In this document: piece after piece, positions 57,011 through 64,000 of the stretch | How the letters are laid out: each line of letters begins with the position of its first letter | Position numbering within the stretch: position 1 is the stretch's first letter | Assembly: GCA_965644315.1 (NCBI GenBank) | Contig: CBFFRQ010000053.1 | Location: 124,001 to 188,000 of the forward strand | Length of the DNA: 64,000 nt | Direction of reading: 5' to 3' | Source of the DNA: Caecitellus pseudoparvulus | Taxonomy: Eukaryota; Protista; Bigyra: Bicosoecida | Made by a program: the position numbers and the translations under genes | Notes under the pieces: model-generated | What the model was told of the DNA's origin: nothing | Seen by the model: the letters and a program-made list of their open reading frames with translations, nothing else | The model's database searches: none

Positions 57011-59006
57011 ATGCAGGTGAAGTTGGTGGGGATCAGAGAGGTCCCTTGCTTGTGTGAACCATGGTGCGTGGAGCATGCCCCAACGTGCTGGCACCCGAAT
57101 GCGACCGGGCCGCCGTCACGTGCACAGGCCAGCGCAAGTGCTGCCCCATCGGGCAGTGTCGCAACTGCACTTGCAAAAGTCTCCGACGGCCTGGCTGAGG
57201 TGACAGAGGACTGGGAGCGGCGGTCAGATTGCTTGCAGCTGTTTTTCGTGAGTGCAGGGCTCGGCGACGGCTCGCTTCATGGCAGGGCCGTGCATGGCGT
57301 GTGCGTTTCATGAAACACAGGCCATCGTCACCCGGCACCAAGGCGAAATCGAGGTGTTCAGGGCGGACGCGCTGAGGAGCATCGGCCAGGCACTGTCGAA
57401 ACAGGTAAGCCAGCAGCCCTCCCTCCTTTTCCCCGCTCGAGCCCCACCCACCTTCCTCGTGCTGCCCTCCCCAGCTCACCGACAGGCGCAGCCAGATCGT
57501 CCGCGACACTTGTGGAGCAATCAAGCACCTCGTGACGGTGCTGGGGCAAGCGGCTCGCCCTGCTGCGGTTGACTTGCTCCCAGCCATGCTCGACATCGCA
57601 GGCAGCGGGAACCGCGTCATCGCTGCGTATGTGGCTGAGGCCCTGCACACACTCATCATGTTTACTCGGCCGCGCAGCCTGGCGTCCACGCTCACCTCCA
57701 CCCTGGCGGGCGGTCCTGGCGGGCACAAGGGCGTGAGCAATACCACCAGGGAGCTGTGTGCCGAGTGCATTCGGACAGCCCTGGAGACCTTTCCTGACGC
57801 AGAAGCAGACCGGCAGCGGGCTGACTTGACGGCGCTGGCAGTGCAGCTACTGTCCGATGCCTCGGAGGGGGCCCGGGCCACCGGCCGGCACTGCATGGCC
57901 CTGCTCAAGCTGCGCTTTGAGGAGCCCACGCTGGCCGCTGTGGCACAGCTGCCACTCCGTCTCAGGGAGGCCGTGACTGAGTGTGATGCGTGGAGTGCGC
58001 AGGGTGGCCTGGCAGACAGCGTGGCCCCCGTGCTGCCCACGGGGACTCGCAGTGACCACACGGCCGCCGTGCCCGCCAAGACCCCGGCGCCAGCACCCCT
58101 TGCCAGTGCCGGTGCCCCCCCCGCCCTGCCTCGCAGCCCCCCCCGCCATGACGAGGGCTCCGCAGCAGGGGGCAAGGCACTGGCCAAGTCTGACACAGGC
58201 AGCTCCCACGCCAGCGTCCACGGAGAAGGTGGTGCTGGCGATGCTCGCAGCAAGTCTGCGGGGCATGGGCGCCCCGGGAGCCAGGCACGGGCGCGGAGAG
58301 CAGGCGGCAGCAGCGGCGGGCCAGGGCGCCACGCCACAGGCCCCGCCGCCATGCTGCACACAGTGGACGATGCCCACGGCAAAGCCCTGTACGTGGGGAG
58401 CCCCGTGCTTGTGACGCATTCCTCCCATGGGAGCGCCGCTGCGTCCTCCAGGGCAGAGGCGCTGGGGTGGGTGCGGTGGATGGGGCGGCCTGCCTTCGCA
58501 GAGGGCGTCTGGCTGGGCCTGCAGCTGGCCTCTGCAACAGGCAAGAACGACGGCACTGTGCAGGGGGAACGGTACTTCCACTGCCCACCCCAGCATGGCT
58601 TGTTTGTGCGCCCCAAGAACGTGGCGTGGCAGGACACACCCACTGAGGCTAGCGCTAGCGTGGAGGCAGCTGCCCCTGCACTGCCGGAAGTGCCTGCCGT
58701 GTCGGGGGTCTCCCTGGCAGATCTGCTGGTGGAGCACAGGGCGCACGTCAACGGTATGCTGGAGGTACTCAAGGCAGAGTTTGTGGGGGTAGAGGGGGTG
58801 GCGGAGGATGAGCAGGCGGCCGCTCGCCTCATGCTGGCGGCAGTGGAAGAGCGCCTGGCCCTGGACCGGCTGTGGTATGTCAGGGTGGCCGGCTTTGCCA
58901 AGGGACAGGCAACGGCTTCCGAGGGAGAAGCACACGACGCCGCGGCAGGTGGTCCTTGAAGGCCGTCGCCCGCAATGTGGCCAAGGGGCAGGCGGTCAGC
59001 GACTGA
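57011..59006 (+). CDS. TOG/CLASP-N HEAT domain + CAP-Gly domain microtubule-associated protein
   Basis: EDWERRSDCL, LTDRRSQIVRDTC, GNRVIA, LLSDASEGARATGR (CLASP-type TOG); GWVRWMG...GVWLGL...GKNDGTVQGERYFHCPPQHGLFVRP (CAP-Gly). Start and last exon uncertain (stop at 58959 if unspliced, 59006 if spliced). Confidence 0.82.
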
Positions 59007-59278: not shown

Positions 59279-62086
59279 ATGGCAGCAGCGGCAGGCGGCA
59301 GACCCCAGGCGCTGCTGTTCCTGACCGCACGGCCGCTGGCTAAGCAAGGACATGGCGGCGACAGGTTCGCCACAGTGAGCATTGACACACTCAGCGACCA
59401 CAGCTTTCACAATGAGGAGCCGGCCTTGCGCAAGGTGTTGCGAGAAGGCGAGGCAAAGGTGACACTTATCCATAGGCATGCAACTCGGGACTTGACAGCG
59501 GAGTTGGGGAAACTGAACAGCAGGTTCGAAATACGGGCTGTGCATTTTTCTGGCCATGCCTTCGCCCCCACCGTGGGCGCCACTGGTACGGCCGCCCCCG
59601 CAACGGTGGCATGTTGAGAGCTACTTCCGCAACACGCCTTGAGCTTTGCCTGCCCCGCAGACACCCTTCCATCGCTAGGGTTTGAGGGGAAGGAAGGCCT
59701 CGTGGATTTGTTCTTGGCTAAAGACCTGCGTGACGTCGTTGTGGACTCCCTCAAGGACATGCGCCTGCTGGTGCTGGCTGCCTGCCACAGTGAAGCCATC
59801 GTGGAAGAAGCCAACATCGACTGCGTGCCCAGCATCATCTGCGTGCCAGCAGAGCGGAAGGTGTCCGATGAGCTGTGCGGGAAGTTCTCCTCGGAGTTGT
59901 ACCGGCACTTGCTGCAGGGGGCGGCGGTGGGCGATGCTTTCAGCCAGGCTTCGACGGCCTGCCGCAACGCACCGTTCACGCTGCGCACAAGGCAGCCTGG
60001 CACCGCCATCGCCACTGGCCCGGGGCACTCTGAGCCCTGTTTTGTCTTCGAGGGGGCGGGAATGAAGGTGGGCAGCCAAAGTGAGGTGTTTGAGGGGCCA
60101 GCCTGCACCCCAGAGATGGGCAACCTGCCCGACACTAGCACGTGTCTCGTGGCGCCAGTGCGCCAACACCAGCTCCTGCGCGCCATGAACTTGGCCCGAG
60201 CAGTGGAGCGTGTCTGCGCCTTGAGCGTGTATGGGCGGGCAGGCATTGGCAAGAGCAAGGCGGCCATTGACGCGTGTCGGTACCAGGCCCAGCGAGACCC
60301 AGAGAAGGTCCTGGTGGGCGTGAGGTTTCCAGGCGCCTCTGCGTCCAGTACAGGCGGGGCGCATGAGGCGGCTGTTGCAACGCGCAGGCCTGTGTGGGAG
60401 GTCATTGCAGAAGCCGTGTGTGCCGAGTGGCGCCGCGAGTGGCGCGGCGAAGAGGAGTTCTTGAGGAGCCTGTTCCAGATGCCCGGCTACCCCCTGCTCG
60501 TCCTGGACGGCGTCGACGCCTGGTTGAGTGGCCCCCCCTCCAACCAGCTCGGCGAAGCCCTCACCGTCGCAGCATTCGTGCAGCACGCCCGGAAGCTGCC
60601 CGAGGCGCAGGGCCTCATCATTGCCACGTCCTGCGAGCCAGCCGTGCCCCGCGACCATGCCCAGAACAAGCACACCCACCTGGTTGAGCCGCTAACCTGT
60701 GTCGAGACTGCCTCGCTGCTGCTTGCAGTGGACCCCCAGGTACGCTTGAAACCGAAGGGGCAGTCAGCAGGCGACTTGCCGCCCATTCCGCTGGGTGGAT
60801 TCCTAGGCCGACCACAGATCGTGCGCAGCGCGCCCACCTTGTCCAAGCTGGACTTAGCAAGAGAACCTGCCGTGAAGCAGTGCGCCGGCGTGCCCCGGGC
60901 CGTGTACCGCCTGGATGAGCTGCTGCACAAGCTGCCGGAGCACGCGCTGTCCATGCTGCAGGCGGCAGACTTGGAGCAGCTGGCACACCTGGCAGCGCAC
61001 GGCAGCCCGGAAGACCATGCGGTAGATACGCGAAAGAGAGGCGTGTGGCCAGGGTCAGGCGCGCGGGCTGGTGCGCCGGCTGCGTCCTTCCCTGCTCCAG
61101 GAACGCCAGCGCCGGCCCCAGCCCTGCTGTGGCCCTGGCCCGCAACGAGTGGCGAGGCAGAGAAGGCCCTGGGGCTAGCTGGCTTGGAACAACTGCCACG
61201 GCTGCAGCCACACTGCGAACAGGCCGCCAGTGTGTGCCTGCCGGGAGACGGCTTGGGACAGTGCATTTGGCTCCGGGCCAGCCGTGGCGCAGAGACAGCA
61301 ACCCAGGACGACTTGCGGCTGGCCTTCATGGACGTGTTTGGAGTGTTCTGCACCCTCCGAGGCCACCCACCTCGCACGCTGAGCCGGTCGCAGCAGATGG
61401 GCCTGCGGGCCATCCTGTTCTGCAAGGGCTTTGCGGGGGTCGGCGACACGCCGGCACGCTCAGAGCAGCTCCAGGAGCTGAGCGAGAGCAGGCAACGGGC
61501 GTGCTTCAACCTGCCTGTGAGTCTGGATGGAAGGGTGCAGCACTCGGGCTCGTGGTGCCGGATGTGGGGCTGGCTGGGGCCGTCCGTGCGGGCGCTGCGA
61601 GGTGGGCTGCTGCCGCTGTGGCACGACAGCCAAGAGGGCCGGGCCTGCCTGCTGCCTTTCGAGACGACCGTCACGTACAAGAACCTCATTGATAGTTGCC
61701 CTGACCCCAAGGCTTTCACGCTGGGCTTGTCGGAGACACGGCCAGGGGGTCTGCGCCTGATGCGCAAGCCCACCAGTCCGCTGCGATGTGATCGCCTCCT
61801 GCCAACGACTGCCGGGTCGTACGACCAGTACCAGGACCCTTTCCGTTCCAGGACGGGGTCTGTGCCCGAGTTACTGCTTCAGAACCCCGACATTGACACT
61901 GCCTTGCCGTGGGGGGTGCCCAAGCGCCAGGCCATGCACCTGGAGCCAGCCTCTGCCTCCAGCCATGCCAGCGCCACCTCCCCCATGCCAGGGTTCACCG
62001 GTCATCCACCTGTGGAGGCAACTGCTGTGATGGGCTTCAGAGCCCCTGGGCATCCCGTTCGCCACAGTTCCCGTCTGCTGGGTTGA
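59279..62086 (+). CDS. CHAT (caspase-like) protease - STAND-like P-loop NTPase - STAT-like linker/SH2 protein
   Basis: Exon 1 (59279-59585) has LLFLTARPL and VHFSGHA. Intron 59586-59660 (phase 1). Then LGFEG, LLVLAACHS, Walker A GRAGIGKS, Walker B LLVLDGVD, and C-terminal W..MWGW...LLPLW...AFTLGLSETRPGGL. Confidence 0.78.
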
Positions 62087-62451: not shown

Positions 62452-64000
62452 ATGACTGACGGCGAGTGGGGCATCTGCCCCGTGGAGGACAACAAGGACA
62501 TTGTGGAGAACAGCCCCGTCAACTACGTCTACATTGTGCGTCCCCCGTGCTGCCTCGCGGCGCGCCGGCGTGAGGCTGGCGTGGCGCTGCCAGGGCGCGC
62601 AGCTCCCAGCTCCTCGCCACCACCAAGCCAAGCAAGGCTCCGTTGTCACGCCCCTCGCGCCGCCGACCTCCGCAGGCTCTGTTCATGGGCATGTATTTTG
62701 CATTGTCAGTGTACCTATGCTACGAGCTGTATGTTTTCTGCAGGGACAAGCAGAAGGGCTTCTGCGAGGCGCTGGGCAACAACAAGAACCAGGTCATCGC
62801 TGCCCTGGGGCTGGGCTCGGTCTTCCGCCTGCCCACCGTCATGACGACGAACTGCGTCATTGAGGAGGCCTTCCGGCTGCTGAAAGACGTGCGTTGGCTG
62901 GCAGCCCGCTCACGGCGTCGAGGGGTGTCGTTTCCCGCACTTCCCCAACGCCTCGCGTGGCACGCCCCGTCTGCCGCCCCTCCCCCACCTTGCAGGTGTT
63001 CGTCATGCTGTCATTCCTGCTGATCGTCATGTTCTGGGTGGAGATGCAAAGCTCCATGAGCAGGGTGTCTTCGGTGGACAGGTGCGTCTGAGCTTGCACC
63101 GTCGCAGCGCGATGCACGGCCTTGCAGAAGCCCGCTGCCACGGCCCTCCGCAGGCTGAGGCCGTACGTCATCGCTGTGATGGTGCTGTACAGCACCACCC
63201 GGACAGTGCAGGCAGTCTTCGACCTGTTGGGTGAGAGAACCCTTCGCCTGGTCTTCTCCTTCCTGACCGCCCTGGTGTATGCGGGCGTCCTGGGCGTCGG
63301 CGTGTACTTTGGCTGTCAGCTCCTGCGCAAGATGGGCAGCATGTCCCTGAACGCGACACTGAAAGCCAAGCTGCAGCGCATGACTGCCTTCATCGTGTAC
63401 GAGATCGGCCTGCTCTTCCTCATCTTCGTCGCCTGGCTGGTGCGCACGCAGGTCTTTTCCTACGCCAAGGAAGACGACCCCTGGCTCTGGTGGGGGCTCA
63501 AGCTCATCGAGAAGGTGCTGGAGTTCGTGGCCCTGCTGTTCCTGGTGCAGATCGTCGCGCCCCTGCCCTATGAGAAGATGTGCCCCTGCCTGCCTTGCTG
63601 CCAGGAGTCAGCTGACTCTGGCAAGGGTGGTGACAGCTCAGCTGGTGGGAAGGGCGGCGGCAGCACGGGTGCCAGCAAGGACGTGGAGCAAGGTGGGGGC
63701 GGAGGCTCCCGAGGTGGGGGTTCCCGTGGCGGCGGTGGTGGCTCCCGGGGAGGTGGCTCCCGTGGGGGCGGCTCCCGCGGTGGCGGCGGCCGCGGCGGCG
63801 CGAAGAAGAAGCCCCCAAGTGTGGAAATGACCAGCAAAGCAACGCCCCGACGAGGCAGCTCGGGCGGCATGGGTGGCTCCTCCACCGGCTCTGGCGGCAC
63901 AGGCGGGTCAGGCGGCACTGGGGACACGGTGCAGGCCAACCCCCTGCACACTGCCGGCAGTGACGCTTCCACTGAGGTGGACAACCCCATGCACACGTAG
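62452..64000 (+). CDS. 7-TM membrane protein (THH1/TOM1/GPR137-like) with Gly-rich tail
   Basis: Four exons give about seven hydrophobic segments; FLLIVMFWVE and LRKM...LQRM patterns; stop codon at the window end. Confidence 0.65.
63692..63800 (+). repeat. degenerate coding repeat (GGSRG)n
   Basis: About five GG(G)SRG units in the tail of the 7-TM protein. Confidence 0.75.

Follow-up and report, generated by a model that had tools for sequence, protein, structure and literature searches.

STAND receptors nearly always sense via repeat domains, and in the Apaf-1/CED-4 apoptosome and the NLR inflammasomes the STAND module is accompanied by a winged helix and WD or LRR repeats, the caspase being a separate protein that is recruited by death-fold domains. 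The STAT-type linker–SH2 module is known as a part of animal and amoebozoan transcription factors, and in SH2 domains it is the basic pocket residues that underlie canonical phosphotyrosine binding. Fungal CHAT NLRs have been linked to gasdermins (PMC8851545, PMC12881547). SAVED–CHAT, with a catalytic dyad of H375 and C422 (spacing of 47), is switched on by ligand-driven oligomerization into filaments (bioRxiv 10.1101/2023.06.23.546230).

The gene described here (the query) lies on the forward strand of a 64,000-nucleotide stretch of Caecitellus pseudoparvulus DNA (G000:C53:124001-188000; hereafter the window, to which all positions refer unless another contig or locus is named). The genome is eukaryotic, intron-bearing, GC-rich (about 65% in the window) and 30.6 Mb in size. 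The explanation that we favor, with a probability of about 60% for the whole including its mechanism, is that of one intron-containing gene encoding a protein of ~910 aa, in which a CHAT protease, a STAND NTPase, a flexible spacer and a STAT-type linker–SH2 module follow one another. By analogy with STAND proteins and SAVED–CHAT, such an effector–switch–sensor order would constitute a ligand-gated, oligomerization-activated protease. The main result is the family to which this gene belongs: its combination of Pfam domains is visible in databases, and its layout is apparently undescribed, as full-text searches of literature outside subscription journals yielded no paper describing a CHAT–STAND–linker–SH2 architecture.

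A CHAT–STAND gene with a predicted intron

Gene callers give two ORFs at the locus, 59279–59617 and 59639–62086, which share one frame and are separated by a TGA at 59615–59617. This stop codon falls within a 75-nt GT..AG segment in phase 1 (59586–59660), which we predict to be an intron. The CHAT His codon (59555–59557, in VHFSGHA) lies in exon 1 (59279–59585), which would encode the N-terminal half of the CHAT (caspase-HetF) protease, and the catalytic Cys codon (59783–59785, in LAACHS) lies in the C-terminal CHAT half (59661–59980). The preliminary description had proposed that removal of 59586–59660 restores the His–Cys dyad, and this is supported by coordinate arithmetic and by comparison with the ortholog. 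Given the predicted intron, the His of HxxGH and the Cys of hhhxACxS are 51 residues apart, a spacing calculated from coordinates. Among six frame-keeping GT/AG-type pairs, only 59586–59660 yields a spacing within the range of 41–51 residues seen in intact homologs; the alternative splice pairs fell outside that range and were dropped. The prediction is further supported by the ortholog, in which His and Cys stand in different frames, so that an intron is required at this position too. Of seven candidate GT..AG introns found there, six are in phase 1, with His–Cys spacings of 42–54.

The two exons were searched separately. Exon 1 aligned to the CHAT N-terminal halves of 11 homologs, with both His of HxxGH invariant, and the Cys was invariant in the full-length alignment. 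Scanned apart with Pfam CHAT (PF12770), exon 1 scored 13.6 bits (E=0.047) against a cut-off of 24 and exon 2 gave no match, and all nine intact family proteins scanned scored 32.9–60.4. The top PDB match of an exon 1 profile was the CHAT protein 8tl0 (E=7.9e-5), which was also the closest solved CHAT to the family profile (E=4.2e-17) and which we take to be the SAVED–CHAT filament. The PADLOC model SAVED_CHAT matched one family member, and PADLOC returned no match for the query protein. The gene is thus predicted, from its motifs and their conservation, to carry an intact His–Cys CHAT dyad.

Were 59586–59660 to remain unspliced, the gene would be split or a pseudogene with no intact dyad. The two ORFs listed by gene callers fit that reading, as does the donor GTACGG, which is unlike the GTGCGT of predicted neighboring introns; one allele of the locus has GTAAGG, which is nearer to consensus. 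We consider it very improbable in view of the ortholog, which is split alike but with another intron length and frame, of the CHAT of a paralog (below), which is likewise interrupted by GT-AG introns, and of the allelic variation. Across six near-identical alleles, exon 1 has seven synonymous changes and one non-synonymous change (pN/pS 0.05) and exon 2 has 30 and 15 (pN/pS 0.17); both exons are under purifying selection.

The STAND NTPase (NB-ARC/AAA_16-like) spans 60119–60946. It contains a Walker A of the form GxxGxGK[ST] (GRAGIGKS, 60233–60256; GPAGIGKS in other alleles) and a Walker B of the form hhhhD (LLVLDGVD, 60494–60517). The sensor-1-like IIATSC (60617–60634) ends in Cys, not in Arg, an Arg that varies across the family, and a GxP-like helix with CAGVP begins at 60881, its GxP Pro being invariant in the alignment. 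The preliminary description had located all of these motifs correctly (His, Cys, Walker A, Walker B, IIATSC and the GxP-like motif). The family FxGR motif ahead of Walker A is degenerate in both the query and its ortholog. Pfam NACHT matched the query below threshold (E=0.002), and relatives pass the NB-ARC, NACHT or AAA_16 cut-offs. After the GxP, no winged helix was matched in 12 SH2-type proteins by a profile that also missed several TPR-type controls. Because no winged helix was detected in this test of limited sensitivity, Apaf-1-type ring formation is not assured. An Ala/Pro-rich spacer follows (60947–61201), which is probably disordered, judging by its composition. From the GxP to the linker Trp, the query has 124 residues, with a core that is 19% hydrophobic and 15% Pro; across the family, the GxP-to-linker spacer ranges from 56 to 179 residues and is mostly of low complexity.

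The C-terminal linker–SH2 module

We assign the C-terminus to a STAT-type linker–SH2 module, comprising a helical, EF-hand-like linker with a poorly modeled lineage-specific insertion (61202–61600), an SH2 domain whose phosphotyrosine pocket is degenerate (61595–61936), and a low-complexity tail that contains no Tyr and ends at the stop codon (61937–62086). The SH2 assignment of the query is transitive, because the query alone lacks a significant match: Pfam returned no SH2 match, and against a leave-out family linker–SH2 HMM the query alone did not exceed 2000 shuffles. The assignment therefore runs through the ortholog and through profile and structure tests. The ortholog scored 21.7 bits against the leave-out family HMM (best shuffle, 3.9), and the C-termini of query and ortholog align with E=1e-20. 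When a profile of these two sequences only was compared with the whole PDB, it matched STAT5B with E=3.5e-5 and 18 of its 19 matches were STATs; by hhalign, it matched the family profile with 95% probability. The top PDB match of the 13-row family linker–SH2 profile was Dictyostelium STATa (E=2.3e-22).

The predicted structure of the module (mean pLDDT 62.5), with linker helices at model residues 7–145, is partly circular evidence, as its input alignment held canonical SH2 rows, whereas the result with the query-plus-ortholog profile is not circular. The model matched SH2 folds with Z up to 11.3, Dictyostelium STATa (1uus) with Z=10.4 over 184 residues in a whole-length alignment, and Atlas STAT clusters with a TM of 0.55–0.56 over residues 1–252, its full length. 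A parallel between the C-terminus and the STAT linker and SH2 had been drawn from motifs in the preliminary description, which asked for modeling as a check; the STAT5B profile match and the SH2 and STAT fold matches agree with it. In Foldseek, nothing matched with an E of 0.001 or below; the rows that it listed are SH2-containing proteins. Single-sequence AlphaFold of exon 2 reached a pLDDT of 33.9, and ESM Atlas features of the C-terminus scored under 0.8. Matches of query pieces to SMAD MH1 in a phmmer search of the PDB (E above 1.2) were set aside as chance.

The SH2 core tryptophans and the LSE/PGG motif are retained in the query, as is the Ser at betaB7. The residue at betaB5 is Gly (61724–61726, within FTLGLSET at 61715–61738) and that at alphaA2 is Thr (61667–61669), so the betaB5 Arg and the usually basic alphaA2 of phosphotyrosine-binding SH2 domains are both missing; the ortholog has Thr and Leu, respectively. 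In the 11 other family SH2 units, betaB5 is Arg in ten and Lys in one, and alphaA2 is Arg or Lys in 10/11. This pattern makes canonical phosphotyrosine binding unlikely for the query and likely for the rest of the family. To judge by these columns, the basic pocket residues were lost in the lineage of the query and its ortholog, and the Arg-less SH2 would be a derived state. The loss of the phosphotyrosine-binding Arg, as first described, is thus upheld, but it does not define the class, in which 11/11 other units are basic at betaB5. Nor is the query a STAT transcription factor, which would have a DNA-binding domain and a Tyr after the SH2: no STAT_bind match was obtained and no Tyr follows the SH2, and STAT-style reciprocal dimerization is therefore predicted to be unavailable to it.

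Relatives, paralogs and the query lineage

A search of 1.84 billion representatives returned 44 hits for the query, mostly to the C-terminal half of CHAT. The full order CHAT–STAND–linker–SH2 was found in Saprolegnia diclina (XP_008612470, with the database title 'SH2 domain-containing protein'), Mataza sp., Norrisiella sphaerica, Leptophrys vorax and four other assemblies, from organisms that we take to be stramenopiles and rhizarians. In family members, a single chain carries CHAT, STAND and SH2 matches that exceed or approach the Pfam cut-offs. Several of these sequences come from transcriptomes, so that in these cases the fusion exists as one mRNA. Two members carry tandem linker–SH2 units (P0062, in the Norrisiella cluster, and P0043, from L045), and one protein from Nemacystus is matched by the linker profile but has no Pfam SH2. 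The same CHAT–STAND core is joined to TPR in bacteria, and oomycetes (Aphanomyces, Pythium) have FHA–CHAT–STAND proteins (P0029, P0056), FHA being a phospho-threonine reader. A tree of STAND sequences pairs the query with its ortholog on long branches (100/99), among proteins of the SH2 type, and the deeper nodes are not resolved; the SH2 type undergoes five changes on this tree, of which the starred branches force only one, a result compatible with a single origin of the type as well as with several. Domain and profile matches thus delineate a family across stramenopiles and rhizarians, of which the query is predicted to be a divergent member. Two family members lie near or beside an SH3-domain gene (L045:1-113, L046:3708-6374), an arrangement that may be due to chance.

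The Caecitellus genome holds a second CHAT–STAND–linker–SH2 gene, very distant from the query, on contig C18 at about 250577–253794 (L014:1578-4795). Its SH2 Arg is intact, its CHAT dyad is split by GT-AG introns and a Tyr directly follows its SH2; on these features it seems likelier than the query to be a phosphotyrosine-gated protease. A recent duplication of the query from this paralog was rejected, as the two match with a BLAST E of 0.018 and do not group in the tree. The presence of an Arg-bearing and an Arg-less copy in one genome offers a natural pair for ligand comparison. Other STAND genes are an Arm/LRR–CHAT–STAND gene of over 3100 aa (L012:480-9998, minus strand), a CHAT–STAND–TPR gene (L013:319-5997, minus strand) and a TIR–NACHT–SH2 ORF (contig C73, L016:1087-5847), whose SH2 bears the Arg; the last was not matched by the STAT-type linker profile and is possibly a separate STAND–SH2 fusion. 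In a stand-alone SH2 protein (contig C68, L015:2734-4347) with its Arg intact, the SH2 is apparently preceded by helices and by another SH2-like segment that is degenerate. Kinases matching PF07714, a profile that does not show tyrosine specificity, are present in the genome, and matches to PF00102 are short and weak. The genome gave no match to a STAT DNA-binding domain in an uncontrolled search and none to gasdermin or metacaspase in weakly controlled searches.

The query is single-copy and has a syntenic ortholog (L025), flanked by a CAP-Gly gene upstream and EMP24 downstream. In the window, the CAP-Gly gene (57011–58959), with a helical N-terminal part, is 39% identical to its syntenic counterpart, and the downstream multi-exon membrane-protein gene (62452–64000), with a Gly/Arg-rich tail, has a last exon that is 71% identical to the ortholog. 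Identity of the query to its ortholog is 39% in the C-terminal half of CHAT and 28% in STAND and linker–SH2. ENA and Logan metagenomes contain nearly identical copies of the gene, and so does a contig of 2.4 kb (L024) that was deposited under Symbiodinium sp. KB8 and probably comes from a co-cultured protist; an insertion of 286 nt in this contig corresponds to a gap in the assembly (263 N). One metagenome scan returned only the known ortholog.

These data bear on two alternatives to the favored explanation. The preliminary description took the SH2 for a sensor or decoy. In the strongest form of that reading, an Arg-less SH2 integrated as bait in an inflammasome-like immune receptor would trap a pathogen effector aimed at SH2/STAT-like proteins and thereby trigger cell death. 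The effector–STAND–sensor order fits this reading, and so do the genome's other STAND receptors, whose effectors are of the CHAT or TIR type and which end in TPR, LRR/Arm or SH2. The low identity of STAND and linker–SH2 also fits when set against the 61–82% of the 7TM and EMP24 neighbors, but two other neighbors are about as divergent (29–39%). We regard the decoy as unlikely and as the weakest part of the first description, because the gene occurs in one copy, has kept its synteny and evolves under purifying selection; it is also not close to the Arg-bearing paralog. Amino-acid polymorphisms are few (five synonymous and four non-synonymous in the linker–SH2 of the six alleles), close relatives show no sensor swapping, the SH2 appears ancestral to the family, not newly integrated, and the missing STAT DNA-binding domain, for what an uncontrolled search can say, likewise disfavors a decoy.

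In the second alternative, the query is a degenerating or repurposed paralog with a working protease, in which STAND and SH2 serve as a scaffold with no switch, and the C18 copy holds the family function. STAND and SH2 are indeed the most divergent domains, on long branches, and the FxGR motif, the sensor-1 Arg and both pocket residues have been lost. Still, the query and its ortholog share Walker B and the Lys of Walker A despite about 70% divergence, the SH2 retains its core tryptophans and its LSE/PGG motif, and pN/pS is 0.20 and 0.27 in the STAND and SH2 parts, which leaves this reading quite unlikely.

Proposed mechanism and comparison with known systems

In the favored explanation of a ligand-gated protease, a nucleotide-bound STAND module would hold the resting protein monomeric with its protease off. 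A protein or peptide ligand on the linker–SH2 would release STAND, nucleotide exchange would lead to self-assembly, and clustering would align the CHAT dyad for cleavage of a specific substrate. For the family, the input would most likely be a phosphotyrosine peptide; for the query, it may be an unphosphorylated ligand read by the SH2, or the SH2 may act as an autoinhibitory latch. Fusion of another phospho-reader, FHA, to the CHAT–STAND core in oomycetes is in keeping with this. The degenerate FxGR, the sensor-1 that lacks its Arg, the undetected winged helix and the result that no substrate gene adjoins the query gene count against this mechanism, as do, more weakly, the blank gasdermin and metacaspase searches. 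If fungal and bacterial CHAT NLRs are a guide, the output may be defense or cell death, a proposal to which we give slightly less than an even chance, and ordinary regulated proteolysis in signaling is a serious candidate at somewhat lower odds. More tentatively, we propose a SAR-wide receptor class in which the linker–SH2 would read tyrosine phosphorylation and signal through STAND to a caspase-like protease, with cell death or defense as the outcome, and in which the query lineage would have been re-tuned to a phosphorylation-independent ligand. If true, such a class would link phosphotyrosine signaling to regulated cell death or defense in protists. A linker–SH2 in the sensor slot of a protease–STAND protein also offers an entry to SH2 roles in SAR protists, and the family bears on the origin of the STAT linker–SH2 and on how SAR protists run regulated death or defense.

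The gene had initially been called NLR-like. The effector–STAND–sensor layout stands, with CHAT as the N-terminal effector before the NOD, but the repeat sensor does not: no C-terminal repeat family (LRR, WD40, TPR or ANK) was found in the query or its relatives, which have a linker–SH2 instead. Lacking such a sensor, the query is not an NLR by the tripartite definition. The CHAT–STAND–TPR/WD NLR-like proteins of bacteria and fungi, which are homologous to it by sequence, likewise have an N-terminal His–Cys CHAT followed by STAND; the query differs in its lack of repeats, in the linker–SH2 that occupies the sensor slot, in the winged helix that went undetected and in having no gasdermin nearby. 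Like the query, the apoptosome of Apaf-1/CED-4 and the NLR inflammasomes place a STAND switch over a caspase-fold protease.

Haliangium SAVED–CHAT (8tl0) resembles the query as a sensor-gated protease in one chain with a similar His–Cys spacing, but its SAVED sensor binds cA3, and it has no NTPase, is bacterial and is CRISPR-linked. With the STATs (Dictyostelium STATa, 1uur/1uus; STAT5B), the query shares a helical linker and SH2 over the full module; unlike them, it lacks the coiled-coil, the DNA-binding domain, the post-SH2 Tyr, the betaB5 Arg and a basic alphaA2, and its module is fused to a protease–NTPase. The domain order of the query recurs in the members seen only in databases, such as XP_008612470, none of which is characterized in the papers found, but these have kept the phosphotyrosine-binding Arg.
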